Assembly: GCF_964194025.1 (NCBI RefSeq) | Contig: NC_134470.1 | Location: 76,880,001-76,944,000 of the forward strand | DNA length: 64,000 nt | From: Convolutriloba macropyga | Lineage: Eukaryota | Direction of reading: 5' to 3' | Shown here: in pieces, positions 20,001-62,815 of the stretch | Layout: each line of letters begins with the position of its first letter | How positions within the stretch are numbered: the first letter of the stretch is position 1 | Made by a program: the position numbers and the translations under genes | The notes under the pieces: generated by a model | What the model was told of the DNA's origin: nothing | Databases searched by the model: none | The model's input: only the letters and a program-made list of their open reading frames with translations

Positions 20001-20109
20001 GATGCTCGTGCGACAATTCATAGCCAAAGAATACGCATGAAATAAAGTATAATTTTGGGAGTGAACTACATTAAGATTTCGGTATAATTCAGTAGCATAT
20101 TGTTTCTCA

Positions 20110-21203
20110 ATGTACTCTTGGTCGAGTTTGTTTAAATAAACTTTTAATTTTTTAAATGTATATCAACCATTTCCTAGAAAAAATGGGGAAAAAAGGACGT
20201 TTTACAGTTTGCAGATGATGCATGCATTATTTGTCATTCCAAATCCGATGAAAATCTCTTATGCGAAAGTAAGAGTGTATGTGAAAATACTGACAGTTAC
20301 ATGAGGCAGAATATGCTAACTTTAAACCGAGATAAAACAGAAATTGTGGTTTTTTCAAAAAATGGTGAATCCAAAATTTAACAATTGCCTTATGATGGAA
20401 TTTTTTCATAGAGTCAAAAACAAGTTGTTGTTATTTAGGTATAATGATTGATAACAATCTAAATTTTGACACACAGCTAAACAAAACTCTAACGAAAATG
20501 GCAAATACTATTAGGTCAATTTTTTTAGTAAGACATCTTCTACCATTAAAAGCAGGAATCGGTCTTTTGAAGTCACTTGTTTTTTTCCCATCTCAAAATC
20601 AGTGCAATTTTTTCGAATCGTTGTCGTTTATGTCACTTCAGAGAGTTAATAGACAAATAAAGTGGGGACTAAAGGGTTGCCACCTGCACAAAGAGTTTGA
20701 CAGTGCAAGAGATCTATTATTGAAAGACAAAATTTTACCAGCAGAGCTTTTTATTAAAAAAAGTTGTCTTCTCAAATTTTTCGACCTCTCACAATATAAA
20801 GAAAGCAGTCGAGAAGCCCAAAACTCCTCATTCAGGATTTTTGGAAAGTACGAATTGACCAAAAACACCCAACTGTCCAAACTTTTCCAAAGATTAAGTG
20901 ACAGTCTCAATGAAGTGACAGGTCACTGATCAGAAATTTTTTTAGGAAGTGGAAAAATTTCCAAATCGATATCTGAAAAAATTTTTTTAAAAAATTTAAG
21001 GAAAAACTAAGCAGCAAAATGGTCAAAGTGTATGAATGTGTTCTAATAGATAGACAAGTAAGATGCTTTAGGATTTTATTCTACTGAAGTATAAAGACCA
21101 AACTATTCACATATCTACGAGGCGATTTTGAAAATGTAATTATTTAAACAAACGTTCCTGCTGTGTTTATAACTTTGAATTTAATTTTTTGATGAATAAA
21201 AAA
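20110..21203 (+). mobile_element. 5'-truncated non-LTR retrotransposon (CR1/L2-group-like) RT 3' fragment
   Basis: LQFADD at ~20202-20219, NMLTLNRDKTEIVVF, YLGIMIDNNLNF (ORF 20444-20929), AATAAA plus A run at ~21195-21203. Confidence 0.8.
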
Positions 21204-21751
21204 CTAGGCTCTAACAAGTCTCACCTGCAGCAGACTAAAGTTTTTGGAGAATCTTTTTTAAAAGATGGCAAAACGTTTTAGTTTCTCTGACAAGATAACA
21301 ATGCCTCTTTTGCGGTAGTTAAGCAAATTTGCGCTGTAAAGCAGCCGCAGATGTTATTTCAAACAACTTGTAAAGCATAGCGAATTTAAATAAGAGATTT
21401 TTTGCTCTTAGTTGAAAAATACAGTCCCAATATTGATGATTGATCGCTAATTTTCTTGATTTTTGGGGTGTTGCCTTGTTGCCTGTGTGTCGTTTTGTTT
21501 TGTAATCTTACGACTTATTACCTTGAATTCCTCTTTCGCTCTAAGACGCAATAGAATTCCTATAACATAGAATGTATTTGTATTTCACAAAAAAATTACA
21601 GTGGATAAATTTTCCGCGTTTTTGTCCAATTTTTGCAAAAAAATTTTGCGCAATAAAACTAACAGCAGATGTTGCGTTCAAATAATAATATTTTTATTCT
21701 ATTTTGGCTCGCAACCAAATATTCAAATTCAACTTCTTATCAGCCATAAAT

Positions 21752-22247
21752 GGTTACGTGACAATTTACCCAATTCCATTTTACCCAATGCCATTTTACC
21801 CGACGCCATTTTACCCAACCTGCCATTTTACCCAATGCCATTTTACCCAATGCCATTTTACCGAATACCAACTTACCCAATGCTCTTTGATCTTTTCGTT
21901 CAATTATCCTATAACAAATTAGCAGTCGCTATTAGAAGGATGATTTAAAATATTTGTGGACAATATAATCCCATGTTCGGTTGTGATAGTTTCATATCAA
22001 GTCCCACGGGCCATTTAATTATATAATCGGCTAATCCCATGTTCGGTTGTGATAGTTTCATATCAAGTCCCACGGGCCATTTATATTATAGTCGGCTAAA
22101 TAGTCGTTCTGGTTAATTTAGCAAGGAGGTAAATTGGGTAAGTTGGCATTGGGTAAAATGGCATTGGGTAAAATGGCAGGTTGGGTAAAATGGCATTGGG
22201 TATAATGGCATTGGGTAAAATGGAATTGGGTAAATTGTCCTGACACC
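21752..22247. mobile_element. 496-bp foldback/Mutator-like MITE with 9-bp TSD
   Basis: TSD GCCATAAAT at 21743-21751 and 22248-22256; empty site at 18773-18781; GG...CC ends; TIRs >100 bp built from 15-bp TTTTACCCAATGCCA units. Confidence 0.92.
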
Positions 22248-23587
22248 GCCATAAATATAGTTATATAGGCCCTGTTAAGGTTACAGCTCGAAATGAAATC
22301 TAGTGAAATACTCTTTAATATATTTGTAAACTCATAGCCTGAGAAATGATTTCATTTCAGTTTAAGATACCGATTGAACAAATATTACATCAGCCTGTAT
22401 TTCAACACATTTGATGTAGAATTCAGAATATATAGCTAATATAGACTGCACTACTGTTTAAAATGGTAGCTGTTTGGTTATTATGTTTTGTAGTTTTATA
22501 TCGTGGTTATGGTGCTGTTATTATAAAACAATAACTGTCGCAATATAGCTCTATGTCGATAGCTAGATTTTATTATTTTCCTTCAAAACGACGTTTTTAA
22601 ATCTTCAAAATGGAAAGTCTTGCGACATAAAAGCCGAATGGAATTCGAAAGGTACGTGGATAGTTTTTTAAAACTCGCAACCGTTGTTTTGAACTCAATT
22701 ATTAAACGAAATAAGGCTCATTTTAAAGAGAATTATTTAAAAAAAATTGGGGAGTCATTATATCTCATATGACCTTTCATCATTACTAGGATTATGTATA
22801 TATCGGAAATAGACAACGATTATCAATCCATGGAAACAAAATCGTCTACGGTCGTCACTATAATTAATTTTATTTTTAATAGCCGCACAGCGATAGCTGG
22901 GGCTATTATTGGCCTTCTCTTGGTTTATTTTTTTTTCGTCGTCATGATTTTTGTTACGACCATATGACGTCACAGCCACTTTTTGTTCATTCGTTCATGC
23001 AATTTCAACTGAATTGCATGTGTGACGTCATTTTTCGCTCTTAGTGGAGCGAGTTTTTTTGTTCATGCGCGTGATTAAATTTTTGGTCACACTTGACTTA
23101 CCTTACTCTCAAAAATGACTTCCTCACTTTGAAATTGACTCTTATTTACTTTAATTCAAAGAGATAAGGTCAAATGGGTGTGTGTCACTCTAAATGAAGG
23201 TTATTTGAGATCAGCTAATAGAGGCAGCAATAACTTATACAGATTTTCAATCAAAATATAACAGATCAGCCTTCAATGAAAAGACGAATTTTTTTGGTCT
23301 GTTTTTTTTAGACTGCCGATCTACGAATCTATTGCGGCTATTTTCTGGCAATCTGCCGGCTATGTTTTGAAATTTTTGTGAAAAAAACATTCAATCAAAA
23401 AATTTGATAAGTTAAGGGCTAAAAGATGCAAGTTTTTAATTGAAATTTGTATTAGCTAGCATGCAATCAAAAAAAAGGATGCTCGTGCGACAATTCATAG
23501 CCAAAGAATACGCATGAAATAAAGTATAATTTTGGGAGTGAACTACATTAAGATTTCGGTATAATTCAGTAGCATATTGTTTCTCAA

Positions 23588-24681
23588 TGTACTCTTGGTC
23601 GAGTTTGTTTAAATAAACTTTTAATTTTTTTAAATGTATATCAACCATTTCCTAGAAAAAATGGGGAAAAAAGGACGTTTTACAGTTTGCAGATGATGCA
23701 TGCATTATTTGTCATTCCAAATCCGATGAAAATCTCTTATGCGAAAGTAAGAGTGTATGTGAAAATACTGACAGTTACATGAGGCAGAATATGCTAACTT
23801 TAAACCGAGATAAAACAGAAATTGTGGTTTTTTCAAAAAATGGTGAATCCAAAATTTAACAATTGCCTTATGATGGAATTTTTTCATAGAGTCAAAAACA
23901 AGTTGTTGTTATTTAGGTATAATGATTGATAACAATCTAAATTTTGACACACAGCTAAACAAAACTCTAACGAAAATGGCAAATACTATTAGGTCAATTT
24001 TTTTAGTAAGACATCTTCTACCATTAAAAGCAGGAATCGGTCTTTTGAAGTCACTTGTTTTTTTCCCATCTCAAAATCAGTGCAATTTTTTCGAATCGTT
24101 GTCGTTTATGTCACTTCAGAGAGTTAATAGACAAATAAAGTGGGGAATAAAGGGTTGCCACCTGCACAAAGAGTTTGACAGTGCAAGAGATCTATTATTG
24201 AAAGACAAAATTTTACCAGCAGAGCTTTTTATTAAAAAAAGTTGTCTTCTCAAATTTTTCGACCTCTCACAATATAAAGAAAGCAGTCGAGAAGCCCAAA
24301 ACTCCTCATTCGGGATTTTTGGAAAGTACGAATTGACCAAAAACACCCAACTGTCCAAACTTTTCCAAAGATTAAGTGACAGTCTCAATGAAGTGACAGG
24401 TCACTGATCAGAAATTTTTTTAGGAAGTGGAAAAATTTACAAATCGATATCTGAAAAAATTTTTTAAAAAAATTTAAGGAAAAACTAAGCAGCAAAATGG
24501 TCAAAGTGTATGAATGTGTTCTAATAGATAGACAAGTAAGATGCTTTAGGATTTTATTCTACTGAAGTATAAAGACCAAACTATTCACATATCTACGAGG
24601 CGATTTTGAAAATGTAATTATTTAAACAAACGTTCCTGCTGTGTTTATAACTTTGAATTTAATTTTTTGATGAATAAAAAA
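23588..24681 (+). mobile_element. Second copy of the non-LTR RT fragment, produced by the tandem duplication
   Basis: Near-identical to 20110-21203; ORF 23922-24407. Confidence 0.8.
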
Positions 24682-27517
24682 CTAGGCTCTAACAAGTCTC
24701 ACCTGCAGCAGACTAAAGTTTTTGGAGAATCTTTTTTAAAAGATGGCAAAACGTTTTAGTTTCTCTGACAAGATAACAATGCCTCTTTTGCGGTAGTTAA
24801 GCAAATTTGCGCTGTAAAGCAGCCGCAGATGTTATTTCAAACAACTTGTAAAGCATAGCGAATTTAAATAAGAGATTTTTTGCTCTTAGTTGAAAAATAC
24901 AGTCCCAATATTGATGATTGATCGCTAATTTTCTTGATTTTTGGAGTGTTGCCTTGTTGCCTGTGTGTCGTTTTGTTTTGTAATCTTACGACTTATTACC
25001 TTGAAACAAAAATCTTTCGGTCTTCTTTAAAAGCTATACGGGAACCTATCTAATGTTTTGAATTGATACCTAATGACTCTTTTGACTTGGAAAATAGTTT
25101 ACCTTGAATATAATATGTGTCTGCATAGTATCTTTAAAAAATTTAATGCTGGTTGATGTTCTTGGTTCTTTTTATTGTTTTCATCAGAATCCGTTTAATT
25201 ACAAGTCACATTGATTTGAAAAATAGAGCAAAATGAACATATAAACACTTTTCATTTAATAGCCAATGATTATGATGACTTAAATACTTTGTAGTAGTTT
25301 TTTTTAGATTTTGCCTGTATTTGTTGTTATTCGGTATTTCCATCTCTTTGCCTCAATAATGACAGGTCACCTTGGTTTCCTATGGTGTTATATGCGTATC
25401 AATTTAGTACTTTTTCATTTAAAAACTCATTGTTATCATTATTATGGAGTTATTTGGTTTCCAAAGTTCAATGGTTTTTTTTTAAATTTGTTCCCTTTTA
25501 CTTATTATTGCTGACATGCCACGTAGTCTCATTAATGACAACTTCTTTTTTTCTAGTGAAAAAAGTCATATTAAAAAAAATGTTTTATCTAACATTCTCT
25601 TGATTTTCTCATGAATTGTTTTTAAAATTATATATTGCGCTTTGGTCGTAAATCAAGCTTTTTTCGTTTATAATGCTGTTTCTGTTATCTCGTAGTCTCA
25701 GTCTCCATAATGACAGGTCTCATCGGCACTATAATACTATAAAGCAACTTGGCATTATTATCTTGCTTGATGGTTTGAGATTCTAAATTTTTTGCTTAAG
25801 CACCAAATATTTTTGGTACTTAAGGTGTGCGGGGTGGGGCTATAATGTGCAAACGTACATTGAAAGCCTTCTGGTTTGAGATAATGCTAGATATGAGCAA
25901 TTTGTTTGAAAAGTGACCAAAATTTTTTCCTTTTTTGTAAAATTGAAATTCAAGATGCAATCGCTGGTAAATAAAGTTTGTCTTGAACTTTCAAATTCTT
26001 CAGTGGCTTCTCTTTATAACCAGTTATGGCGTTGAGTTGATTTGCAAAATCAAAGAGACCCGAATAGGCTGCCATTCTCTTAAAAGGGGGCCGGTCCTCA
26101 AAGCTGGCTGATACTGACAATGGTCATCCAAGTGCTTTAAAAATTGTTTTTGGCAATTATTTTTGACTGAATTAGTTCTCAATTTTCCAAGATTGACATC
26201 TTAAACAATTTTGGCATAAATTTTTTGAAAGTGTAGTGACCGTCGAATTATAAAGTTTGTTTTATACATTGAAAAGTCATTAATCAGTTGTTCAAAGGAT
26301 TTACATTTTAACTACTTTAACAGAATAAATATTAACTTGTCCTGAAAAATTTTTAAAATGGACTATTTCGGGGTGAATATAGTTCGAAATGATTCATCAA
26401 GCCTCATTTCAACATCAAGATTGAACTTGAAATTTTGTTAAAGTTGTTTGTGAATTAGAGATTTTGGTTCCTAACTTTTGCGACTTATTATTTGTGTCAT
26501 CAACAAATAATATTTGAGCTGATTTGATAGATGTCAAACATTTCAAAACGCCTTTATGTTTGCGTAATATCATTACGTAACAGACATCCCATTATGTAAT
26601 ATCTCGCAATACTAATATTGATGTATATAGACTTTTGCTATCACATGAAATATTCTTTGCCTAACCAGTGGGTTCAAAATCAGTTAAATTGGATGGATTA
26701 GTTGCTCAGAGATTTTGTGCCTAGATTTACCAAGACTATATTTAAACATATTGTTATAGAATGCCGATTTATGGAAAATTCCTAAACTTTGTTTAAACAT
26801 GATATGCAACAAGTTGCTTTTGAAATAATTGAACTTATGAACTGTGATACCTGTTGCCTAACCAGAAAGCTCCCCGATTGGTTAATTTTCTGGGCTGTTG
26901 TTTGTTCATAAACACTTTAACCAAGTTTTCTGTAACTTTTATCAGTTGCTATATGGTATGGATGTCCAAATATGAACACGTATGGCGTGATTGTTGTCGA
27001 AAGAATGAGAAATAAAGTCATGTCAGACTATGGGGTCTGTTTGTTCAGCTCTAACAAGGTCTTTAATATTTATTTCTTCAAATCGGGTCACTCTAATATT
27101 GTATGACAAAACTATTTCTAGATCGGTTAGCGATCAACACGTTATCTGCAACTTAATTGCAACTAGATTGACTCGGTTCTAGTCCTTAGATTATTTAGAA
27201 ACATTTATACAGAATTTCATCGAAAGCTAGTGTTGGCTTTTCATCTAAACATTGTTGAAACTCGCATCTTAGATTATTTAGAGAAGTTTCCTTATTGTTA
27301 TTTCAACACAGCTTGCGATTGGAGTAAACTAAACATTTTCCCTGAGGTCGTAATTAACTAGACTTACCTGTTACTAACTTGGTTATAAATAAATAAATAC
27401 CCACTGTCTTATCCTGATAGGGTTTGTCAACTCGAGTTCGAGTTCGATAAATGTTATTTTGGTCTCATTCGGATAATGTATGCTATAGTAAACCCCGGAC
27501 CGTTGCTTCAGCTTAGA

Positions 27518-27824
27518 ATGGTGGGACTAGACGCAGGAATTATGGAACATATAAGTCACTACGCAAACGGATTCCTGAATAATTCGGGGGCTTTTGCAAC
27601 GTCGGGGGCTTTGATTCCCTCCCCACCGAGCAAAGCAGTAGCTGCCGAAATTGACCTGGAGGATACAGAAGAAGTTGGGCTAAATTTGACACAGCCGAGC
27701 AAAGTTGGGCGTGTGGGGGACGATGAAGTTTCTCCCCAGCCGATGTCATTGACGAAGAATGAACAAACCCACCTCCATCACCACCATCACCATCATGAGA
27801 ATTCTAAAGGACAGTGCACAAAAG
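27518..27824 (+). CDS. MADF-BESS transcription factor, coding exon 1 (low-complexity N-terminus with His run); an in-frame upstream ATG at 27476 is an alternative start
   Basis: Part of ORF 27476-27859, GC-richer than its flanks. A TTCAG acceptor-like site ends at 27511, just before ATG 27518. Donor AAAG|GTAAAT at 27824/27825 is phase 1 and joins in frame to the acceptor ATTAG| at 28435. Confidence 0.75.
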
Positions 27825-28042
27825 GTAAATTTCAGGTGACATTTACAGAAAAAATTTAGTTTGTATGTTGTTAGACGGTTGAGAGAGAACAATGTAAATT
27901 GTTCATAAAAAAAGCTTTACCTAGCTTGACAAGAAGCTCTACTTGTTCAGCGTATACTTGGCTAGAGAATCGAAGCCTTGAGGAACAAGAAAGAGCGTAA
28001 GAACGGGTTATAAGAGATGCCCAAGTTCGAGAGCTTAATTAA

Positions 28043-28115
28043 GACTAGTTGGTGTAAATGGGTAGCACACTAGGCATGCAAGTAAGAGATGCTGGTTCGA
28101 ATCCAGTACTGGTCC
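28043..28115 (+). ncRNA. tRNA-like element (tRNA pseudogene or SINE head, TGC at the anticodon position) in an intron of the MADF-BESS gene
   Basis: Acceptor stem GACTAGT/ACTGGTC, D stem GTGT/GCAC, T arm GCTGG-TTCGAAT-CCAGT, downstream T runs; the anticodon stem CTAGG/GTAAG does not pair well. Confidence 0.65.
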
Positions 28116-28435
28116 AGAATTTTGTCAGTTTTTTGCTTCAAGAATTTATGCTGTTCGCTGAGCGGAGAGATCAACCATACGATATTTTCCTATTTCCTAA
28201 TAATCTTTTACAATGCCAGATTTCAAATTTGCAAGTTTGTGTTTCAAATTCTGACTTATATCTCAAACCGTTTCACGGTCCTCTATTAATGAAAGATTTT
28301 CTCAGTGAATTCAAGCAGAGTCATGTAAACTATAAATTTTTTTAGATTACGGTTTTATTGTCCGTCTGTGATTACGTAACATATTAATGACTAATGATAT
28401 GATGTAATATTATGTAATCCCATTGTTATTATTAG

Positions 28436-28663
28436 GAAGCTCCAAAACAGGGGGTGATTGCACGACCTGCAGCACCTGTTCAGTCAAGTCCCGTCTGTAC
28501 CTCAAGGGGGAGAAGACAGAACTGACGATGGCTGAGAAAGAGAGACTCCTGGAGTGTATCAAGATCCACGAGGTCATCTTCAATCCGGAACACCCCTCCA
28601 GGTCTGTCCGCGACCTCGTCACCTCTGCTTGGGAGGATGTGGCCGAGAAGACTGGATTCCCAG
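28436..28663 (+). CDS. MADF-BESS transcription factor, coding exon 2 (CxxCxxC motif and N-terminal half of the MADF domain)
   Basis: Acceptor TTATTAG| at 28435; donor CCAG|GTAAAC at 28663/28664, phase 1 on both sides. Encodes KERLLECIKIHEVIFNPEHP...AWEDVAEKTG, matching the MADF pattern LIxxVxxxPxLWDxxxxxY...AWxxIAxxLG. Confidence 0.88.
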
Positions 28664-28971
28664 GTAAACTTTCCACCCAACCCCCCCCCCCCCCTCTCGA
28701 ACTCTTTCATGGGAACTGATCTGAGTCGTGTTGGTAAGATTAGTGGTTAGAGCAAGTCAAAATTCTGAAAAATTTTATACGATTCAGAAATTCAAGACAA
28801 GTCACAGTTCATCGTGAAAAATTAACTTTACAAGATCTTGATCTAGTTTTGCCTCACAAGTTTTGATCTAAAATCTTAATCAAGATCTTGCACGTTTTGT
28901 CAAGATATTTGGTTCGTATTGAGAGTATTGCAATTAAAATGACCTGTAACTCCCAGATTGAAATCCCAAAT

Positions 28972-29102
28972 TGGATCTTTTCAACAATTGCCCCCCCCCC
29001 TTGGTACCTAGTAGAGAATCGCCACCCCTTCTGTGCTATACTTTACCACAATATTACTTGGCCTACTTTACAAAGGGGGGGGGCAATTGTTGAAAAGATC
29101 CC
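28972..29102. mobile_element. 131-bp GGATC...GATCC MITE with 6-bp TSD, intronic
   Basis: TIR GGATCTTTTCAACAATTGCCCCCCCCC; TSD CCAAAT at 28966-28971 and 29103-29108. Confidence 0.88.
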
Positions 29103-29199
29103 CCAAATTTTGCCTCATAATTCTGAGCCTTAATGTTCCTCCGAGGATAAAATAGCGACATTTTTATGACGTATAGAATAGGGTCTGTTTTTCTTCCAG

Positions 29200-30158
29200 T
29201 GGAGCTGTGCAAAGAAGCCTGGCGCAAAATCAAACTTGCCTACCAGAACTCACAGCGTCACGCGAGGTCAAAGGTCAATGCAGACGGCAGCATTCGCAAA
29301 CCCTACTACCTCCACAAACAGATGACCTTCTACGAGCCACACCTGCGGGCGCGTGACGTCATGAACCAACTCGTCAAAGTGGACCAACAAGCTGCTCAAG
29401 AACGCAACCAAAAGAACCACTCCTCGTCCGGGGTCTCAACTGGAAGTCTGTCGCCTCAACCTCAACCTTTAAACCTCCAAAGCCGCAACTCAATGTCATC
29501 GCCCGATTCCTTCATGTCGCATCGATCCAACGAAGATTGCAACTCGCCCCTGGCTCTCGACAGCAGGGTTTCAGTCATCGAGTCTTACGTCACAAGTCCG
29601 AACCCGATTGAAACGACATCAACCTCAGGTATGGTCGCTACTGAGTCGTCACTACTTACGTCACAGCCTATGACGTCACTACCGCCATTCGTCACTACTT
29701 CGCTAGCCAATCAAATGCTTCCGCCTCCACCGACTGCGAGCGACTTTAAAACACAAACTGAAAGAGTTTTGAAACGAAAATTAGAATCAGAATTTTATGT
29801 TCCGCAGCATCATAATGGCCTTTCGGCACCTAAACAGCCTCATCTGGTTGCCCAAACGGGCCATTTGCCTTTTAACGGTCACATAAGCCCCGTGGAGCAG
29901 GCCCAAATAAATACCCCCGCAACCAGCGTTCCCCAAGTTTCAATTCAAACATCACCTGTAGCCAGTACCACCCAAAATATGGCGCGACCAACTCCAATTA
30001 CGGACGCCACCCCTCCACCCCTTGAAGTCGACGCTGATTTACAATTCCTTTTATCGCTTCACGCCGACATCAAGAGTCTAAATTACAAGCAGGAATTCGG
30101 TTTCAAAAGGAAAGTTTATGCTTTGATGGAAGAAATTCTAAATGGACAAAATGATTGA
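29200..30158 (+). CDS. MADF-BESS transcription factor, coding exon 3 (C-terminal half of MADF, S/T/P-rich linker, BESS motif)
   Basis: Acceptor TTTTTCTTCCAG| at 29199, phase 1. VELCKEAWRKIKLAY...PYYLHKQMTF completes MADF; DADLQFLLSLHADIKSLNYKQEFGFKRKV matches BESS. Spliced CDS is 307+228+959=1494 nt, i.e. 497 aa plus stop. Confidence 0.9.
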
Positions 30159-30572
30159 AAAGTGTTCACGCTTTTGACCACTCAAAACATTGAAGGTTGT
30201 CTTGTTGTTCGCAATTGCGCGTTCACTTAGCCGCAAGAGCGATTAGCAGACAACGAGCTGTAATCAATTGTACAAAGAAAACTTTTCTCTATCAAAACTT
30301 TTTGAAGTAACGTAAAAATACGTTCCATTAAATTCTAACGACACATAATTAGAAATTGGTGATAATTTCGTGTAACGAATGTACTAATGTGTCAAAAAAG
30401 CAGCGGAAAACCAATATGATCGGCTCTTTCTGTGCTGTAAAATTCGTAAACAAGTGAACGAAAATTCGAGGCAGTTTATTTTTCGCTTTTGACAAAAAAA
30501 CGGATGTTATTTTGCTGAGCATTGTACAAATTTTGTGACCATAATTAAACAAGTAGCCTAACAAATAGTTGA

Positions 30573-30735
30573 CTGATCTTTTCAACAACAACCCTCTCCT
30601 CCCTCCCCCCCCCCCCACCACCCCCCCCCACCACCCCCCCCCCACCACCACCACCATCACCATTGCAAAAGGGGGAGGCAATTCCTGAATAGAATTTAAG
30701 CTAGAAAGAGGAGGCGAAAGTGTTGAAAAGATCGG
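30573..30735. mobile_element. Degenerate relative of the GATCTTTTCAACA MITE with an internal poly-C/(CCA)n tract
   Basis: GATCTTTTCAACA ... TGTTGAAAAGATC inverted ends; no clear TSD. Confidence 0.6.
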
Positions 30736-31099
30736 TAATAACAGTAACAATAAGGATTGTGATATATAGTAATAATGATGAATTATCTACCTCATATCAG
30801 ATTACAGATGATATCTTTTCTTCTCTCTCTCTCTCCAGCCATACCATACAGTCCCATATCTTTCTCACTATCTAATTTTCTCTCTCTTGTCTATCTCTAT
30901 TTTTATGCACTCGATCTCTTGTAACATACAATTTAATATTTGTTTGGATCTCTTTTTCTCACACTTTTTTTGCATCTTAAAAAAAATTGTCTTTGTTATT
31001 TTCGAAGGAAACGTAAATTAAGAAGCGTAACCGTTAATTTAAATAATATGCCCACAAAAACTTATGACCAATCACCAGGAACTGCGCGCTAAGCAAGCA

Positions 31100-31579
31100 A
31101 CTGGGCCGAGGAGTGTCCCCAAAAATGTTGCTGAAAAGAGTGTAAAAGTACAGAAATTACACGCATATTTCTCCGTTTAATTAACGGTGGGAGAGTGTAA
31201 TTACAAGAAAGTAGTTGAAACCAAACCTTTTTGAAAACAAAGGTGGAAGGAGGTAGTGATGATCGATCCCCCCACCTTCCCTTTGTCCAACATGTTCCTT
31301 TCGCTTTCTGCATTAACCACTGCACCAACTGCTACAACAATTGAACGTTTCATTTTGGTTATAATGGTAATTCCATGAGAGTGTAATTTTTTATCAGTCC
31401 ACCCTAAATAACACTTTTTGCAAAGACTGTAAAAAGAGTGGAGAAAAGAGTGTAAATACAGTGTAACTTTTTAAAATTACACTCTAACACTCTCTTCCCC
31501 GATAAATAGGAGTGAAACTTTCATTACCCTCTAGTCCCACCTATTTAGGGATGGCTTAAGGATGAACCCTTGGCCCGGG
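31100..31579. mobile_element. 480-bp CCCGGG-terminal MITE with GAGTGTAA subterminal repeats and 2-bp TSD CA (EnSpm/CMC-like)
   Basis: Right end CCTTGGCCCGGG; left end ACTGGGCCGAGG (CCCGGACCGAGG in the truncated paralogs at 32274 and 33669); CA on both flanks; empty site ATG-CA-ACATTGG at 35274-35275. Confidence 0.85.
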
Positions 31580-31912
31580 CAACATTGACAAGTAATGAGA
31601 TATAGCCGGTTCAATAAAGATGCAACGCAAGCAAATGTTCAAAAAACTACCGGCGTGCAAATGAACATTGAACTGCAGATCCCAGCATGTTTTAATTTTG
31701 AGTTTTGACCTTTTGAACATTTGATAGCGTTGCAACTTAATGGGTCCGACTATATCATGAAATATCATGCATTAAACACATGAACTACCAAAAATCAAGA
31801 CTAAAACTAACTAGAGCATTTAATTGAATAGAAAAAGCAACGGTAAAAATATTAAGATTAACTAAACGTCCTCTTAGATAGGCTACCATTGGCGGCTTTA
31901 ACTGGGTTTTTC

Positions 31913-33921
31913 TTGAATGCCTCGGTGAAAAACAGTTTGAAATGATCTGTAATAACAGTAATAATAAGGATTGTGATATAGTAACAATGATCATATAAAT
32001 TTTTATAGTAACAATGATCAATTATCTACCTCAAATCATCTTTCTCACTATCCAACTTTCTCTCTTTTGTCTATCTCTATTTTTATGCTCTCTATCGCTT
32101 GTAACGTACCATTCAATAATTGTTTGGATCTCTTTTTGACACTTTTTGCAGCTTAAAAAATTGTCTTTGTTATTTTCGAAGGAAACGTAAATTAGGAAGC
32201 GTAACCGTTAATTCAAATGCCATGCCAACAAAAACAAATGACCAATCACCAGGAACTGCGTGCCAAGCAAGCACCCGGACCGAGGATTTTCCCCAAAAAT
32301 AATGGGGAAAAGAGTGTAAAATTAAAAAAAAATTACACCCCCATTTCTCCGCTTAATTAACGGTGGAAGAGTGCAATTACAAGAGTGTAATTTTGGAAAA
32401 AAGTTAAAAAGAGGTAGTGAGGATCGATCCCCTGAAGTTGAACAGCGTTCCATAGCGTTGCAACGTTATAAGAAGACTGATTATATCATGAAATATATCA
32501 TGCAATAAACACATGGACTACCAAAAGTCTGTCGCCTCAACCTCAACCTTTAAACCTCCAAAGCCGCAACTCAATGTCATCGCCCGATTCCTTCATGTCG
32601 CATCGATCCAACGAAGATTGCAACTCGCCCCTGGCTCTCGACAGCAGGGTTTCAGTCATCGAGTCTTACGTCACAAGTCCGAACCCGATTGAAACGACAT
32701 CAACCTCAGGTACGGTCGCTACTGAGTCGTCACTACTTACGTCACAGCCTATGACGTCACTACCGCCATTCGTCACTACTTCGCTAGCCAATCAAATGCT
32801 TCCGCCTCCACCGACTGCGAGCGACTTTAAAACACAAACTGAAAGAGTTTTGAAACGAAAATTAGAATCAGAATTTTATGTTCCGCAGCATCATAATGGC
32901 CTTTCGGCGCCTAAACAGCCTCATCTGGTTGCCCAAACAGGCCATTTGCTTTTTAACGGTCACATTAGCCCCGTGGAACAGGCCCAAATAAATAACCCCG
33001 CAACCAGTGTTCCGCAGGTATCAATTCAAACATCACCTGTAGCCAGTACCACCCAAAATATGGCCCAACCAACTCCAATTACGGACGCCACCCCTTCACC
33101 CCTTGAAGTAGACGCTGATTTACAATTCCTTTTATCGCTTCACGCCGACATCAAAAGTCTAAATTACAAGCAGAAATTCGGTTTCAAAAGGAAAGGTTAT
33201 GCTTTGATGGAAGAAATTCTAAATGGACAGAATGATTGAAAAGTGTTCACGCTTGTGACCACTCAAAACATTGAAGGTTGTCTTGTTGATCGCAATTGAA
33301 TGCCTCGGTGAATGCCTCGGTGAAAAACAATTTGAAATGATCTGTGATAACAGTAATAATAAGGATTGTGATATAGTAACAATGATCATATAGATTTTTA
33401 TAGTAACAATCATCAATTAGCTACCTCAAATCATCTTTCTCACTATCGAACTGTCTCTCTTTTGTCTACCTCTATTTTTATGCTCTCGACTTCTTGTAAC
33501 ATACCATTCAATAATTGTTTGGATCTCTTTTTGACACTTTTTGCAGCTTAAAAAATTGTCTTTGTTATTTTCGAAGGAAACGTAAATTAGGAAGCGTAAC
33601 CGTTAATTCAAATGCCATGCCAACAAAAACAAATGACCAATCACCAGGAACTGCGTGCCAAGCAAGCACCCGGACCGAGGATTTTCCCCAAAAATAATGG
33701 GGAAAAGAGTGTAAAATTTAAAAAAAATTACACCCCCATTTCTCCGCTTAATTAACGGTGGAAGAGTGCAATTACAAGAGTGTAATTTTGGAAAAAAGTT
33801 AAAAAGAGGTAGTGAGGATCGATCCCCTGAAGTTGAACAGCGTTCCATAGCGTTGCAACGTTATAAGAAGACTGACTATATCATGAAATATATCATGCAA
33901 TAAACACATGGACTACCAAAA
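31913..33921. repeat. ~610-bp direct repeats (31913-32526 and 33308-33921) flanking the exon-3 duplicate
   Basis: Offset 1395; identical predicted 60-aa ORFs at 32120 and 33515. Confidence 0.9.
32525..33298 (+). pseudogene. Partial duplicate of MADF-BESS exon 3 plus start of 3'UTR; contains an intact 221-aa BESS-only ORF (32574-33239)
   Basis: Colinear with 29444-30217 (offset 3081), no indels, 19 substitutions in the ORF; lacks the MADF domain. Function unknown, so labelled pseudogene provisionally. Confidence 0.8.
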
Positions 33922-33959
33922 ATCAAGACTAAAACTAACTCGAGCAACTAACTGAATAG

Positions 33960-36480
33960 AAAAAGCACAGGTAAAAAGCACAAGAGACCCGGCTGAAAGA
34001 CTAAAACCGAAACCCGTTTGATTCCCTTCTTCGCGGCCGTAGTTTGAAATTATTTGCTTGAAAAAAGCTGAGGTGATTGAAAATGTGTCCTGTTTTAGGC
34101 CACTGATAACTTCAATTTTTGTTTGTTTTTAGAGACAATTACAAGATGCTTGGAAATTAATCTGTTTTTTGTGCTTTTTTGGAAAAAACAAGGTTCATTT
34201 CGAAGAGCTAATACAGTCTCTCTAAGAAAATTTTGCCTATCATTTTCTTGATTAGATTTTCCGTTGTTCGTCAAACTGTCAATTTCGCACGATTTTTGAA
34301 TAATGCTCAATCTACAATGTGTTTAAGGTTTTCAATTGATTTACTTGGTACTTGAATATTTGGTCATTTTTATCTTCTCTCGCAAACTTATACCCCCTCT
34401 TGATTTCACGTAGAATAGGTTATATAGTTACACTTATTAATAACTTGACCTGCAAACCAAGCAAATTGAGTCCAGCGTATCATGGTCTTCAAGTGACTTG
34501 TAAAAACTAATGAAGCAGATGAGCAGGATACCAATATTTTCTGATAAAATGAAACAAAGGGGAGATTTCATTTTTGGCTATGAGAATAAAGCTGAACAAC
34601 TCAACGAAAGGTTTTCGAAATCTTGTAAATAAAGACAACGCAAACATTTGACTGCAAATTTCATCAACAGTAGAAATTTTTTGGGATGATATGCATCTAA
34701 CAAAATTTAGTTGACGATGAGATTGAACACATTAAAATCGGCTCGCATTAAAATAAGTCCTCAAAAGAAGCTTTTTTTCAAACATTTCAAAAAAAAATGT
34801 TTTTTTTTGTTTCCTTGCAGCTGTATAAAAAATATGAGTCCTCAAAACTTTTTAAATAGTCCATGTGCATGCGCTCAAAAGTGAAGGCAAACCAGACGAG
34901 ACGTGAAGCAGAGCAAAAGCAAAAGCTCACAAGAAACAATAATTGCAAAATTTTACATGAAATATCTAATTCATATCAGATTACAGACAATTTCTTTTCT
35001 CTTTCTATCTTTCCAGGCATACCATATTGTCCCATATCTCTCTAACTTTCTAATTTTCTCTCCTTGTCTATCTCTATTTTTATACACTCGATCTCTTGTA
35101 ACACACAATTCAACATTTGTTTGGATCTCTTTTTCTGACACTGTCTTGTATATTAAAAAAAATTAGTCTGGTTATTTTTGAATGAAACGTAATTTAAGAA
35201 TCGTAACCGTTTAATTAAAGGTCATGACCACAAAAACAAATTACTAATCACCAGGAACTGGGTGCCAAGCATGCAACATTGGCAAATAGTGAGATATAGC
35301 CAGTCCCATATAGATGCAACGCAAGCAAACGTCCGAAAAGCTCCCGACGTGCAAATGAAAAACGAAGTGCTGATCTCTACATGTTTTATTTTTTAACTTT
35401 GACCCTTGAAACGTTCGATAGGGTTGTAACTTTTTAGACTGAGAAATATCATTGCATTAAACACATGAACTACCAAAAATCAAGACTAAAATTAACTAAA
35501 GCAACTAACTGAATAGAAAAGCACAGGTAAAAGTTTTAAGATAACCTAAACGTCCTCTAAGTTAGACAAGTAATGGTGGCTATAGCTGAGTTTTTTTAAA
35601 TGCTTCAGTGAAAAAATTCAGGGATGATTTTGCTAGCGCTTAGCATGATTCCACGGGTGATAATCTTCGACAGATCATCTGCCCAGAAATTTATGCGTAG
35701 CTTGATATGAGAGGGCGGGTTGAAAAATGAAGATCTAACCTGTTTGATGCTCTTTTTCGGCTTTAGTTTCAAAACGTTCGAAAGCCCTGCTTGAAAGAAA
35801 GGAAAATATGTCTTGTTATAGGCCAACGATAACTTCAATTATTGTTTGATTTCAGAAACAATCACAAGCTGGTTGGTAGTTAATAGTTTTAGTTTTTTTT
35901 GTAGAAAAAAGGTTTTACTTTTGTCAGATTCTATCAAGATCCAGATAATTCACATTAATAATTCATTGCATGATATTTTGAAGATCAAATTTTGTCCCTC
36001 TAAGATAAATTTGCCTACCATTCTCTTAGTTAGATATTCCGAATTTTGACAAGCAGCCCATTTCGAACAGATTTTGATTGATGCAGACTCTGCAATTTGT
36101 TTAAAGTCTTCAGATAATTATTTTGGTATTTAAATATTTGATCATTAAAACCTTCTCTCACAAATTTATAACCTCGTTGAGTTCACGTAGAATAAATTAT
36201 ATAATTAAGTTTTTATTAACTTGATCTGCAAACAGATCAATTTGAGTCGAGCCAATCATAGCCGTCAAGTGACTCCGAAGAACAGAAGAAGAGGAGCAGA
36301 ACACCACTACTTCTTGGGGAAAAAATCAAATATAAGGGAGAAGACTTTTTTTGGCTGTATTGATATTGTCGAACGAATCAACGAAATTTTTTTGTCTCCT
36401 TCATATTAAATATGATGCGAACATTTAACAAAAAAGGTAGTAGAAGATGAGATTAAACACATTCAAATTGGTTCGCAGGT
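33960..36480. repeat. Older diverged duplication (~33960-34750 vs ~35515-36480) plus a fourth copy of the 3'-flank unit (~34965-35600)
   Basis: Shared anchors such as GGCCA..GATAACTTCAATT (34098/35821), TTCACGTAGAATA (34405/36183) and AATCACCAGGAACTG. Confidence 0.75.
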
Positions 36481-36939
36481 CTACGATGAAATATAACAGA
36501 AACTATTGAAATCTTCATTTCAAAAGATCAAACAGTAGTATTTTGTTCATTAGCAGCTCTATAAAAAAATCCAAATTGTCAAAACTGTTCAAAAAGACCA
36601 TGTTCCTCTGCATACAAAATGTTGCAAACAAGAGACTTAACCAACTACTGACCAATTACTGTTCTAATTTTTTATCAAATCTGTTTGAGCTGCTAGTCCT
36701 TGAGCAGTTCAAAGACAGCTCCTGCAAAAAAATTGGTACGCAACATCATGTTCCAAACAATCACTGAAATTCTGATACATTTCATTGATCATTGTAATCA
36801 TTTAGAAGAACAAAAGTTTCCAGTTAATGTTTAGGAACCGCGAAAAGTCATGTGTAAAAAATTACTTCCAGACTGACACAGTGCGGCAATCGAAAAGGAA
36901 CAATCTTTGCAATATTATCATTTTCAGTCAACATTTTTG

Positions 36940-37450
36940 AATATTCTGATGTTTTCGTAAACGAATAATTTGTTCACAAAGATTGCAGGATCGGCGAAAC
37001 AGCAAACTGATCTTCAAATTCACATCAACAATGCCATTAATTGGAGCAAAGAGAATCTTCGTTACTTCAATTTTTCGGGTTTGAATGCGTTCAATTTAGT
37101 CTAAAATAATAAAACAGAGTGCAATTTCATATTTCGAGACAATGAAACAAAAAATTGTGAAATTCAAATAAAAACCTTTGGAACCTAATTTCCAGCTATA
37201 TGCATGACGAACATCATTTGTATTACGTTATAAACAAACAAAAGCAAAAATTGGACAAATAAAAGAACAAATAGATCTTCATCTCCAAAAAAGATTGAAA
37301 CCTACGCACTATCGGTATTGTTTTGTGGAAGGAACATCTGGGTTTCAACCAAGACAAATTTAGAGAGAATGAAAAAGACTCTACTAGCTTGTGCCGCATG
37401 GGCATGTTCCATAAATCCTTTCATCAATTGAGAACACATTGTGTGTTTGC
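36940..37450 (+). mobile_element. Possible very old non-LTR RT fragment
   Basis: DLQIHINNAINWSKENLRYFN at ~37009-37072 resembles the LQxDLxxxxxWSxxNxLxFN motif; the remainder is too decayed to read. Confidence 0.4.
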
Positions 37451-39419
37451 AAACCCTAGAACTGCTGCCAATTTATTTCAATATATTTGAATGAAATATT
37501 GGTGGCAGGTCTACTGTCTGCAGACACGAAATATGTTCTCCATCGCTCAAATAATTTGAGGACGACAAATCTACGCAATTATCATATACTTAAGTACAAA
37601 AATCAAAAGTCAAACACAAAAAAACGATGTCGCAATTGGGAATTCAAAAAACGATGTCACAAAACAGGACTCATTGATAAAAATTTTGTCATCTGAGAAG
37701 ATAGCAGTCATGTTAATTGTCAAAATATTTTTAACGCTGCTTAGCTAATTTGGACGACTCGTTATCAATTTTCTCATTTTTTGGTTACTATATTTTTGCT
37801 TTTCCAGCCACAAGTGAAGAAGAATTACAAATTTGTTTTATGACTGAACTGACGTCAAATTTCCGACATTAACTTCATCCATACGGATTTTCACCTTCCA
37901 AAAACTCTAAACTTTAACAATTAAACTGGGATACTCCACACAAGTGTTTAGGCATTAGATAGAAACCAAGCTTGGTTAAATTAGTGTCATTATTATTATT
38001 ATTTTTTTGCTTTCAAAACAGTGTTTAAAAAAAATCACTCTTTTTGCTTACAAACCGCTGAAAATGCACACTAAATATGCTGCGTGGCAAAAATATATAT
38101 GGTGGAATGAATAGTAGGATGGCAGTAGAAATGGATTTTCAGCAGATTTTCAACCTTTTAGATGCTTGTCACTCAAAAAGCTATAATTATTTGAATTAGC
38201 GTTTCCGTGTTTTTCAATCTCCGTCTCTGCTGATTAAGAAAGCTCATTTGAGAAATTCTTCATGCCTCTTCTTACTTCGATATTGTCTGCATCACTATAA
38301 CAATTGCGTTTTTGCTTGTGTTTTGAAAATATGAATGAAATGGAAACAAGAAAAGTTTGAAGTCAAAACCAACAAAATGATGGTAGTATTTTGATATAGG
38401 AAAGTATGCTTTGTCTCAAGAACTATTATGTAACTGACCACTCATTTATGCTTGTTCGAAATCTTCTTTATTCCATGATTGACATTAAATGGTTATCAAA
38501 TGTTATGACTAAAATCCAATTCAGTTTGTGGAAAGATTTGTATTAAGAAATGAAGTAAACAAAGCATTGACAAAACTGCTTTTCAGGTCAATATTTTCTG
38601 ATTTTCATACTTTTTGTCCCATGTCACAAACGTTTGAAGAGAAATTAGATATCCAACGTTTGCTCTACTACATACAACAGCAGAAATTTTTGTTAAAAGT
38701 TGCTAATTTTTTGACGAAAATGTGAAAAAATTTCTTCCAGACCATGGTTGTCATACAAAAAATAAAACCAGCAAACAGTTGTATAGATTGATTCAAAGTG
38801 TTATTATTCAAAAGAAACAAAATTCAACCTTCTGAAGAAAAAATGTAAAATTGAGATCAAGGGATCGGAACAAAATTCAGAAAGTTTTTAAAGTTGAAAA
38901 AAGAACAAATATTTTTGAATTATTGAAAAGCCTCAGTTTTTGTTAGAAAAAACTTATGAATGCATGAAACAGATAACATGAGTCGCATTTTCGTCTTTTA
39001 TGGCAATGGAGAAGAATTAACGCGTTGAAAATTATGCAAATTTAAAGAGTAAACAATGGCGCACCTGAACAAAAAGTTTAGCAAAAGAACGTCTTTTCTC
39101 ACAAAAAAGCATTAAACGAAACTGCCCTTCACTTGAACTTGATTTTCAGATTTTTTTAAATGCTTTTTGTACCTCCAGTACTTTAAGTACAATGGTACAA
39201 CCAAGTTTTAATTGCTTTATTCAATTTTGCCTGCGATTGAGAGGTAAATTTTTCATTGCACTGCTATCAGGCAAAATTGTGTTGAGAATGAGATTCTTTT
39301 CCTATTGCAGATTATAACAAATGAAAAGCGTTTATCATGCAACACATCAGTAATCTCGGAACGAGTTTCCAGTTTTGATCAGTATTTTTCCAGTTTAAAA
39401 CACATCTTCATTTGACAAA

Positions 39420-40075
39420 TCAGTACTGATCACGTCTTCTTTCAAGTCTTGAGACTTGTGAAGACTTGCTTAAGACTTGACAAGTCTTGAGTCATTTCTT
39501 GACCAAGACATGCCAGTCTTGAAACTAGTCTTGACCAAGACTTGACTGGTCTTGGTTATAGCGCAGTATATAAGCAAAGTAGCGTTTTGAGAAGAAATGA
39601 TTTTTAATTAATGCATTTCAAAACCATCTAAAATTGGCAAAAATTTTTTACGAGAAATTTGTTAAAGCTATATCTGATACGAGCATATACCAACTCAAAA
39701 TTTCCCATATATTCACTCTGAAACCATTTTGTTTCAATGGGCAGAAATAAGTGGCCAGGCTTGGATCTTTGGACGATATAAGAATTTTTCAATCTCTATC
39801 AATTGACCTTTTTAAAAGTGTGCTTCCTTTTTTGCGTTTTGGAGTGTATTGTAGGCAAGCACCTGTAAATGGCGGTTTTATCGTTACGAAACGAACAAAA
39901 ACAACTAAAAGTTGTGGTGAATACTTGAACCAAGACTTGTGAGGTCTTGGCCAACAATTGTGCACGACTTGTCAAGTCTCGGCTGAAACTTGACTCAAGA
40001 CTTGTCATGACTTAACACCTGATTCAAGACGTGCCAAGTCTAAAAAGTGACATGACCAGAGCTCGATCAGAGCAT
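39420..40075. repeat. AAGACTTG/CAAGTCTT-motif dispersed repeat (also ~1580-1880, ~41150-41290, ~53530-53640 inverted)
   Basis: Dense short inverted motifs shared between these loci; termini not resolved. Confidence 0.6.
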
Positions 40076-42273
40076 AAAGTTATCCAGCACATCTAGGTTT
40101 TTCGCACATTTTTAAGCACTTTTAGCAGACACAATTAAACAATGAAATGCGAGTCTGCTTATAGCATCTAAAATAAGTTCAAAAATTACCATTCCTTAAA
40201 TTGCACTGCTTTCGCAAAACTGCTACCTTTGTCTTTTTTCTTATTATGGAGTTTTTCAGAAACTATAAACATTGAACGATAAGTGTCTTTGTGTCCGAGT
40301 TTCTACAAAAATATCATTATGAAATATTTCGCGAATGGTTAAGGTTCTGCATAAATAAAGCGGCTAATCAAAGCTTAGAAAAATCTCACGTTTCCAATGC
40401 AATTTAATGGGGAAATTTACAAAATTGTTGTTATAATATTTGCTTCTTTTCAAGGTAGGCTTTCAACCGTCCACACTAAGAGACTACCAGAAGTTCTCAC
40501 AACTGAGGAAAAATAAACGCAAACAAATTTTAGTTTTTAATTTATCCTCCTAAGCTAAAAAACTGTTTTAAAACACTTTTATTCTGAGAACAGAAAAATT
40601 TTGATTTCAATTTTGAAAAGGCGCTGAAACGGGCAAAGGCTGTTTTTTTGGCCCCCTTTTTCGAAATTTAACTTCCAAAAACACTGTAATTCTATAAAAC
40701 CAAGTAATTAAAAAATAGTTAGAGAAAGATCAAAATGTTGAAGCTAAGGGAGCTGATGTATTGAAGTGCCGAACTGGAGATGAAGCACTGCTTGCTCAGA
40801 ATAGTTTCCATTGCTGAGCCTATCTGAATGCATTTACGTGCACAAGGTACTTCCAAATTTCGAAGATGAAAAGGAAGTCCCATAAACGGAAAGTTCAGTC
40901 AGTGTTTTTCACTTTTAAACTAGATGTTGAAAAGTGGAGTGTACTTTCCTCCGCAACTTACTTTTTGCGGAAGCTAAATTGTGCTAAATTGTGCGGCAGA
41001 TTAATTGTAAAATTTAAACGCTTTCCTTATTTTGCGTCAAAAGTGTGCTTCCTTTTTCATTTTGGAGTGTATTGTAGGCAAGCACCTGTAAATGGCGGTT
41101 TTCTCGTTACGAAACGAAAAAAAAACAATACAAAGTTGTGGTCAATACTTGAACCAAGGCTTGTGAAGTCTTGGCCAACAACTGTGCACGACTTGTCAAG
41201 TCTCGGCTAAAAATTGACTCAAGACTTGCCATGACTTAACACCTGATTCAGGACGTGTCGAGTCTAAAAAGTGACATGACCAGAGCTCGATCAGAGCATA
41301 AAGTTATCCAGCACATTTAGTCTTTTCGCACATTTTTAAGCACTTTTAGCTGACACAATTAAACAATGAATTGCGAGCCAGCTTATAGCAATTAAAATAA
41401 GTTCGGAAAGTACCATTCTTTAAATTGCACTGCTTTCGCAAAATTGCTTCCTTTGTTTTTTTTCTTATTATGGATGTTTTTTTTCAGAAACTATGAACAT
41501 TGAACGATAAGTGTGTTTGTGTACGAGTTTCTACAAAACTATCATTATGAAATATTTCGCGAATGGTTAAGGTTCTGCATAAATAAAGCGGCTAATCAAA
41601 GCTTAGAAAAATCTCACGTTTCCAATGCAATTTAATTGGGAAATTTACAAAATGGTTTTCATAATATTTGTTTCTTTTCAAGGTAGGCTTTCAACCGTCC
41701 ACACTAAGAGACTAGCAGAAGTTCTCACAACTGAGGAATAATAAACGCAAACAAATTTTAGTTTTTATTTTATCCTCCTAAGCTAAAAAAAACTGTTTCA
41801 AAACACTTTTTTTCTGAGAACAGAAAAATTTTGATTTCAATTTTAGAAAGGCGCTTAAACGGGCAAAGGCTGTTTTTTTGGCCCCCTTTTTCGAAATTTA
41901 ACTTCCAAAAACACTGTAATTCTATAAAACCAAGTAATTAATAAATAATTAGAGAAAGATCAAAATGTTGAAGCTAAGGGAGCTGATGTATTGAAGTGCC
42001 GAACTGGAGATGAAGCACTGCTTGCTCAGAATAGTTTCCGTTGCTGAGCCTATCTGAATGCATTTACGCGCGCAAGGTACTTCCAAATTTTGAAGATGAA
42101 AAGGAAGTCCCATAAACGGAAAGTTCAGTCAGTGTTTTTCACTTTTAAACCAGATGTTGAAAAGTGGAATCTACTTTCCTCCGCAACTTACTTTTTGCGG
42201 AAGCTAAATTGTGCTAAATTGTGCGGCAGATTAATTGTAAAATTTAAACGTTTTCCATATTTTGCGTCAAAAG
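39815..42273. repeat. Tandem duplication, ~1.23-kb unit
   Basis: AAAAGTGTGCTTCC at ~39814 and ~41039; second unit ends TTTGCGTCAAAAG at ~42273; shared AAAAG at the junction. Confidence 0.92.
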
Positions 42274-62308: not shown

Positions 62309-62815
62309 NNNNNNNNNNNNNNNNNNNNNNNNNNNNNNNNNNNNNNNNNNNNNNNNNNNNNNNNNNNNNNNNNNNNNNNNNNNNNNNNNNNNNNNNNNNN
62401 NNNNNNNNNNNNNNNNNNNNNNNNNNNNNNNNNNNNNNNNNNNNNNNNNNNNNNNNNNNNNNNNNNNNNNNNNNNNNNNNNNNNNNNNNNNNNNNNNNNN
62501 NNNNNNNNNNNNNNNNNNNNNNNNNNNNNNNNNNNNNNNNNNNNNNNNNNNNNNNNNNNNNNNNNNNNNNNNNNNNNNNNNNNNNNNNNNNNNNNNNNNN
62601 NNNNNNNNNNNNNNNNNNNNNNNNNNNNNNNNNNNNNNNNNNNNNNNNNNNNNNNNNNNNNNNNNNNNNNNNNNNNNNNNNNNNNNNNNNNNNNNNNNNN
62701 NNNNNNNNNNNNNNNNNNNNNNNNNNNNNNNNNNNNNNNNNNNNNNNNNNNNNNNNNNNNNNNNNNNNNNNNNNNNNNNNNNNNNNNNNNNNNNNNNNNN
62801 NNNNNNNNNNNNNNN
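62309..62815. other. Assembly gap (507 N)
   Basis: Run of N. Confidence 1.

Follow-up and report, generated by a model that had tools for sequence, protein, structure and literature searches.

A partial duplicate of the last exon of a MADF-BESS gene

We analysed a 64,000-nt window of the Convolutriloba macropyga genome (RefSeq assembly GCF_964194025.1, contig NC_134470.1, positions 76,880,001 to 76,944,000 of the forward strand; all positions below count from the first letter of this window). The window contains the gene LOC142336472 and, on the same strand and 2.4 kb past its stop codon, a 774-bp copy of part of its last exon. The copy carries an open reading frame (ORF) that retains the BESS end of the parent protein and lacks its MADF domain. 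A preliminary description of this DNA had taken silent-biased divergence between copy and parent as the sign of a BESS-only, microProtein-like antagonist. The BESS-only copy and the silent bias of its divergence are real observations. We are moderately confident, however, that the copy is a young, non-processed partial duplicate of the last exon of LOC142336472 that is drifting and probably non-functional. This reading builds on direct observations of the anatomy and junctions of the copy, of its mosaic divergence, of the polarity of four replacements and of its absence at two orthologous loci.

The product of LOC142336472 has 497 aa and is identical to RefSeq XP_075241452, which carries the name “uncharacterized protein” and shares a 90% cluster with the initial protein match, through which it was recovered. 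RefSeq gives four transcript variants that share one common protein. The coding exons were located with this protein (Table 1); the GT donor of exon B was read from the sequence at 28664, and the stop codon occupies 30156-30158. Pfam was run on the exons singly and then on the stored full-length RefSeq protein, rather than on a splicing model of our own. In the whole protein, MADF (PF10545) scores 40.2 bits at aa 140-222, with a match on the exon B piece as well. MADF is N-terminal and BESS (PF02944; 21.2 bits in the reference allele, which has a glutamate at residue 201 as numbered in the copy and is called the E allele below) is C-terminal.

The copy lies about 3 kb downstream of its source and derives entirely from last-exon sequence of the parent. 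The two align without gaps and differ at 21 of 774 bp (2.7%). Nineteen of these differences are coding, 12 synonymous and 7 non-synonymous with no indels, and our recount is identical to the earlier tally. The ORF coordinates and Pfam also agree with the preliminary description on an uninterrupted frame of 221 codons that opens at an internal ATG and encodes the linker, a basic patch (KRKLE) and BESS. The predicted product (about 24 kDa) is 97% identical to the parent and differs from it in having T47, L126, N141, Q165, S175 and G208. Its BESS match scores 24.8 bits, above the gathering cut-off of 21, as expected of a MADF-BESS family member. The other hallmark of the family is lacking: Pfam finds no MADF in the copy ORF, because the copy begins at parent aa 261. 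An AlphaFold2 model of the 221-aa ORF, built on a shallow alignment (mean predicted local distance difference test score of 49) and used for disorder and helix layout alone, gives low confidence to most of the chain and places a C-terminal helix at residues 181-218. BESS is thus the single recognised domain, behind a low-confidence linker of about 165 residues. A PDB sequence search with the BESS end found no solved structure.

Table 1. Features of LOC142336472, its partial copy and the flanking repeats (window positions)
Feature	Position	Strand	Basis or remark
Parent coding exon A (aa 1-103)	27518..27826	+	100% identical to the RefSeq protein (tblastn)
Parent coding exon B (about aa 103-179), first half of MADF	28435..28663	+	tblastn; Pfam; splice sites read from sequence
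Parent last coding exon C: second half of MADF, linker, KRKLE patch, BESS, stop codon	29200..30158	+	tblastn; Pfam
Source segment of the duplication (aa 261-497 and first 59 nt of the 3' untranslated region)	29444..30217	+	ungapped match to 32525-33298
Repeat unit R1, directly upstream of the copy, breaking off at ...ACCAAAA	31914..32524		sequence comparison
Low-divergence block: 3' part of R1 and 5' half of the copy, 3 differences in 802 bp (~0.4%)	32107..32908		comparison with counterparts
Copy, 774-bp partial duplicate, all from the parent's last exon sequence	32525..33298	+	ungapped match to 29444-30217
Copy ORF, 221 codons, from the parent's internal M277 to the parental stop	32574..33239	+	ORF list
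High-divergence block: 3' half of the copy and 5' part of R2, 33 differences in about 583 bp (5.7%)	32909..33501		Fisher P = 4e-10 against the low-divergence block
BESS motif match in the copy (aa 180-207), ending just before derived G208	33111..33194	+	Pfam PF02944
Right junction: 3-nt microhomology (TTG), then an extra 12-nt tandem copy of the repeat unit's first letters	33299..33310		read from sequence
Repeat unit R2 on the immediate downstream flank of the copy (97.5% identity with R1)	33309..33921		sequence comparison

The copy is present in both haplotypes

A contig of a second assembly that represents the other haplotype (ENA ERZ25071359, 158 kb, 47x) contains parent and copy in the same layout and with the same junctions. 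It is 99.73% identical to the reference across 11.9 kb from 28367 onward, and the copy is letter-for-letter the same in both haplotypes.

Short reads were consulted as Logan contigs from four DNA-like runs of two samples in one study; the samples may come from one clonal culture and do not count as independent population samples. In three runs from the two samples, both copy-type and parent-type unitigs cover 32909-33050, at depths of 6.4 versus 7.2, 12.5 versus 16.6 and 7.5 versus 11.3. The two depths add up to roughly that of the shared 5' half in runs X2 and X4, and to more than that in X3. From these sums, the genome holds just two versions, parent and copy, and no third paralog with the letters of the copy. 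Unitigs also extend from the copy-specific letter at 33289 into R2, reaching 30 letters into the copy, one short of the 31 letters that the read-mapping tool requires for bridging at 33298/33299.

A local DNA-level duplication between two repeat units

The repeats that flank the copy, R1 and R2, are units of a local array of 1.2-1.6 kb repeats that starts just behind the parent gene. At the left junction, 2 nt (AA) are common to the end of R1 and the source segment, and R2 continues past the point at which R1 breaks off; the right junction has a microhomology of its own (Table 1). The copy is thus collinear with its source, ungapped and close by, with microhomology at its joints, as is characteristic of a non-processed duplicate made at the DNA level. 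Past the stop codon it runs on for 59 nt and shows neither an A-run nor a target-site duplication, while the loss of introns is uninformative for a copy of a single exon.

Two other modes of origin were rejected. A retrocopy or processed pseudogene does not fit the missing A-tail and target-site duplication. Capture by a transposon of the Pack-MULE or Helitron type does not fit the unitig depth, which indicates two copies, or the immediate flanks, which are low-copy local repeats. Near the copy, high repetition is limited to 32341-32381. This stretch of about 40-80 bp with GAGTGTAA-type inverted motifs has unitig depths between 40,000 and 54,000, compared with some 15-20 in single-copy sequence. 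It also occurs in R0 and R2, is embedded in each repeat unit, and resembles an abundant miniature inverted-repeat transposable element or short interspersed nuclear element.

In Symsagittifera roscoffensis (XP_063718415) and in a third acoel, the orthologous locus has a single gene, and no further BESS copy occurs within 10 kb of it. Its absence beside the orthologue in the two related acoels examined suggests that the copy is young. We propose that a microhomology-joined templated insertion, or a template switch at the DNA level, would have made the copy, inserting a 774-bp piece, whose source lies 3 kb upstream, into the local repeat array between two of its units.

Divergence between copy and parent is mosaic

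The preliminary description gave a single total for the differences between copy and parent. They are in fact distributed very unevenly: the first 384 bp of the alignment contain 1 difference and the last 390 bp contain 20 (P = 1.2e-5). At four-fold degenerate sites, none of 72 differ in the 5' half and 6 of 47 differ in the 3' half. The flanking repeats give a mirror image of this pattern, as 13 of the 15 differences between R1 and R2 fall in the first 193 bp and 2 in the next 420 bp (P = 1.6e-5). Taken together, copy and repeats resolve into the low- and high-divergence blocks of Table 1. The high-divergence block spans the junction between the copy and R2, and the diverged 3' half of the copy therefore shares its history with adjacent non-coding DNA. 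The block boundaries run continuously across joints between non-homologous sequences, and no single simple event accounts for that.

Two explanations fit this mosaic. Either recent gene conversions wiped the 5' half of the copy and the 3' part of R1, or a tract of about 600 bp of older or other-haplotype ancestry was built in. Under either explanation, one dN/dS (the ratio of non-synonymous to synonymous divergence, hereafter omega) over the whole copy does not describe a uniform process that followed the duplication. In the sequence of events that we propose, later gene conversion would have erased divergence in the 5' half of the copy. Error-prone repair synthesis was also considered as the source of the dense 3' differences and rejected; it would not favour third codon positions (P = 0.007).

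Silent bias does not require selection on the copy

Omega was estimated by site counting with kappa set to 1 or 3.4. The pairwise value for copy and parent is 0.17-0.23, and strict neutrality of both sequences (omega = 1) is rejected (P = 0.0003-0.002); the claim of a silent bias beyond neutral decay is therefore borne out. Third codon positions account for 12 of the 19 coding differences, the excess to which the P value of 0.007 above refers. Given an omega below 1 together with this excess, we conclude that the differences were filtered by selection on this reading frame. It does not follow that the filtering took place in the copy, as had been argued from the same counts, for half or more of the pairwise path belongs to the constrained full-length gene.

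A more suitable null has the parent constrained and the copy neutral, for which a pairwise omega of 0.5-0.6 is expected. Against this null the data give P = 0.009-0.078, and the 3' block alone gives 0.003-0.039. This rejection is marginal, the observation having been picked because it looked odd. Even this null is too strict, because allelic divergence at the locus is as large as the divergence between parent and copy (2.7%), and coalescence can push the expectation well below 0.5. Between the two haplotypes, exon A of the parent differs at 6 of 309 sites (about 2%; 3 synonymous and 3 non-synonymous), the region around exon A differs at 22 of 709 sites, and farther upstream, as far as some 14 kb away from the gene, a large part of the sequence differs by 2-8%. 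Very plausibly, then, the copy was templated from, or exchanged sequence with, a divergent functional allele, in which case much of the silent excess would predate truncation. Selection before truncation is what the preliminary description itself had named as a refutation of its antagonist. The silent differences would have accrued largely on full-length, selected lineages, namely the parent after the duplication and, plausibly, the divergent source allele or exchanged tract.

This account overlaps with a fallback offered in the preliminary description, that the copy is a relic of a once-functional allele or paralog. That idea comes close to what the mosaic divergence, the allelic divergence and the polarised changes described below suggest. 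Silent changes could not be polarised with the orthologues (Symsagittifera roscoffensis and another acoel), which are saturated at four-fold sites, and a heuristic based on CpG decay had too few sites and was not used.

Replacements fall in the BESS domain

Polarisation was restricted to replacements at conserved ortholog columns, where we could read the polarity of four changes. Three are derived in the copy: P126L, in the GHLPFNGH linker motif, P175S and V208G, all at residues conserved in every ortholog that aligns there. P175S and V208G lie within the BESS block, where the ancestral residues are invariant in five other sequences (the parent K allele and four orthologues), and V208G is placed inside the BESS helix by the structural prediction. 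The fourth change is on the side of the parent. Its reference residue E201 is derived, with K in all orthologs, in the other parent allele and in the copy. The KQKF of the copy, which had been read as a step towards the usual BESS pattern, is therefore the ancestral state that the copy retained, and the E of the parent is a derived polymorphism. In line with this, BESS scores 28.9 bits in the parent K allele, 24.8 in the copy and 21.2-22.0 in the parent E allele, leaving the copy 4 bits below the ancestral-type allele.

In the reference allele of the parent, two derived letters are linked at a distance of 19 bp, at 30074 and 30093; one is silent and the other is the K-to-E change at the invariant K of KQKF. 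Either the allele is new and slightly damaging, or a short conversion tract between copy and parent left the two letters behind.

If the copy were maintained as a BESS-only protein, its BESS block should be protected. In the parent this block is strongly constrained: compared with the Symsagittifera roscoffensis orthologue, 2 of 46 residues have changed, against 96 of 184 in the rest of the region. To find at least 2 of the 6 fixed replacements of the copy in the block has P = 0.0055 under parent-like constraint (2% expected) and P = 0.33 under neutrality (19% expected). With two of six replacements in the block, the very domain that a BESS-only antagonist would require is not protected, and a test for purifying selection on the copy's own BESS domain was thus negative.

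The open frame and its expression context

When random substitutions are placed on the parental sequence, the 221-codon ORF survives in 82% of cases with 5 changes, 67% with 10 and 46% with 19, and the neutral pair R1 and R2 is likewise free of indels. That the frame is open therefore says little.

Upstream of the ORF there are three out-of-frame ATGs (32488, 32500 and 32513) and an AATAAA at 32504. The single acceptor-like AG between these ATGs and the start codon ends at 32563 and is also present in the parent exon. NCBI protein models include none for the copy, a weak negative, though that of the parent is present in the same 90% cluster. A search of sequencing runs with the copy-specific 3' half returned four runs that contain it, all DNA-like contigs with no RNA run among them. 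A promoter, 5' exons and MADF are all missing from the copy, which would most likely be evolving without protein constraint.

Several observations weigh against a drifting, non-functional duplicate. The pairwise omega lies under the simple expectation of 0.5, and the poorly conserved linker has 9 silent against 4 replacement differences. The ORF, the KRKLE patch and an above-threshold BESS are all intact. Apart from the sites 30074 and 30093, no parent allele with the silent variants of the copy was seen, so that a divergent source allele is the conjectural part of our account. Lastly, the copy sits 2.4 kb behind the parent on its strand, and a promoterless fragment could still be expressed.

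Alternative readings of the copy

It is possible, if unlikely, that the copy is transcribed and not used as a protein, either as part of a long 3' untranslated region or read-through transcript or as a non-coding RNA. Its close similarity to the parent might then matter through RNA-level effects, such as small RNAs or a decoy, or through a role as a donor for gene conversion into the parent. Its position behind the parent stop codon on the same strand would allow this, the four transcript variants with one protein show that variation in untranslated regions exists, and the single difference in 384 bp of the 5' half is evidence of ongoing sequence exchange. The other parent allele also has the letters of the copy at 30074 and 30093, compatible with a short conversion tract. 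However, six poly(A) signals (30327, 30544, 31613, 31771, 32321 and 32504) intervene between the parent stop and the copy, and with K ancestral at 30093 according to the outgroups, a new mutation in the reference allele is the simpler explanation of that site.

We consider it quite unlikely that the copy is expressed as a 221-aa protein, made up of a disordered linker, the KRKLE patch resembling a nuclear localisation signal and BESS, that purifying selection keeps as a microProtein-like dominant negative. BESS-BESS pairing would then titrate the full-length factor into complexes with fewer DNA-binding domains. The premise is sound in principle: in BEAF, BESS alone mediates BEAF-BEAF binding and a protein without the DNA-binding domain is a dominant negative (PMC5021357), and MADF-BESS proteins show homodimerisation of BESS (PMC10573801). 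An intact ORF, a BESS above the Pfam cut-off, the location of the copy downstream of the parent on one strand, the low omega (with P = 0.009-0.078 against the copy-neutral null) and the third-position excess are what such a protein would be expected to show. Against it stand P175S and V208G at invariant BESS residues, with the Pfam match stopping before V208G, and P126L in a conserved linker motif. There is no promoter or 5' exon, the out-of-frame ATGs and the AATAAA lie just ahead of the ORF, RefSeq has no protein model for the copy, and both related acoels examined lack the copy beside the orthologue. Mosaic divergence and high allelic diversity account for the silent bias without selection on the copy, and 221 aa exceeds the usual definition of a microProtein. 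The headline of the preliminary description thus keeps its premise and finds no positive support in this locus, where two derived replacements hit invariant BESS residues and NCBI gives no protein model.

A very unlikely version of the antagonist idea has the copy expressed through read-through or a weak start of its own as a natural BESS-only antagonist of the parent and a very young microProtein, in which the changes at P175 and V208 tune the interaction and the weak acceptor-like AG 10 nt 5' of the ATG might take a spliced leader.

That the copy is an assembly artefact, with an alternate haplotype of the last exon of the parent put in the wrong place (one of the refuting outcomes listed in the preliminary description), is extremely improbable: a divergence of 2.7% falls within the allelic range of this genome and short-read unitigs break at the borders of the copy (missing the bridging length by 1 letter), but the copy is truncated and sits between repeat units rather than in an allelic context, the other-haplotype contig has both versions with the same unique junctions, copy-type and parent-type unitigs stand at roughly 1:1 with those carrying the 33289 letter continuing into R2, and mis-assembly was rejected on the strength of that contig and these unitigs.

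Relation to known systems

The drifting duplicate that we favour most resembles non-processed pseudogene fragments and duplicates made by microhomology-mediated template switching. Like them, it was copied locally, at the DNA level, from part of a single exon, without a poly(A) tail or target-site duplication and with microhomologies of 2-3 nt and a short local duplication at its joints; it is also young, has no promoter of its own and still exchanges sequence with its parent. Unlike typical members of this class, its frame is fully open from an internal Met, its pairwise dN/dS is low, and its divergence is sharply mosaic and runs on into the flanking repeat.

The likeness to regulatory proteins is more limited. 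The engineered dominant-negative BEAF without BED in Drosophila (cited in PMC5021357) shares with the predicted product of the copy a C-terminal BESS self-interaction module and the lack of a DNA-binding domain. However, that protein is an artificial transgene of a BED-BESS protein, whereas the copy is natural, comes from a MADF-BESS gene, is known from DNA alone and is substituted at invariant BESS residues. MicroProteins such as plant miP1a/b and LITTLE ZIPPER and the animal Id proteins (PMC4807768, PMC9638782) likewise have a single interaction domain, are related to a multi-domain transcription factor and can be compared with the copy in its birth by partial duplication. In contrast, the ORF of the copy is mostly predicted disordered linker, its length of 221 aa (about 24 kDa) is over the usual size limit of roughly 20 kDa (PMC9638782), and our knowledge of it comes from sequence. 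As for the MADF-BESS factors Adf-1, Dip3, Stonewall and CP60, the parent has both domains in the canonical order and the copy keeps the BESS end; the parent differs from them in being an acoel gene, and the copy, without MADF, is not a two-domain member of the family.

Objects of this kind are ordinary, and what stands out here is the mosaic and an instructive pitfall of dN/dS. When a gene is compared with a truncated copy, the pairwise dN/dS can look “selected”, as the ratio is lowered by selection on the lineage of the parent, by high allelic diversity and by gene conversion. The locus also illustrates that templated insertions of the repair type yield gene fragments that bear ORFs. An expressed copy would be a rare case, natural and from an animal, of a transcription-factor antagonist born by partial duplication, in a group of phylogenetic interest (Acoela), and one that is directly testable against its parent.

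Other observations in the neighbourhood

Haplotype identity jumps at about 28360, in an intron of the parent, from 92-98% over 14739-28355 to 99.73% over 28367-40245. The jump resembles the border of a tract of lost heterozygosity or recent coalescence. Convolutriloba macropyga also reproduces asexually.

An Rfam scan of 26-37 kb found nothing besides one tRNA, a tRNA-Ala (TGC) gene or tRNA-derived element at 28043-28115 (+) in the intron between exons A and B (ARAGORN; Rfam 40.8 bits). A poly-C run with CCA repeats occupies 30580-30650, just 3' of the parent and where the repeat array starts. The window includes one run of N, at 62309-62815. Upstream of the parent, the reference haplotype has two tandem segments of about 3.5 kb (about 18372-21527 and 22248-25847) where the other haplotype contig appears to have one (3220-6699 of that contig). 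Each segment encodes a 161-aa ORF with no Pfam match (20444-20929 and 23922-24407), an apparent structural difference between the haplotypes.

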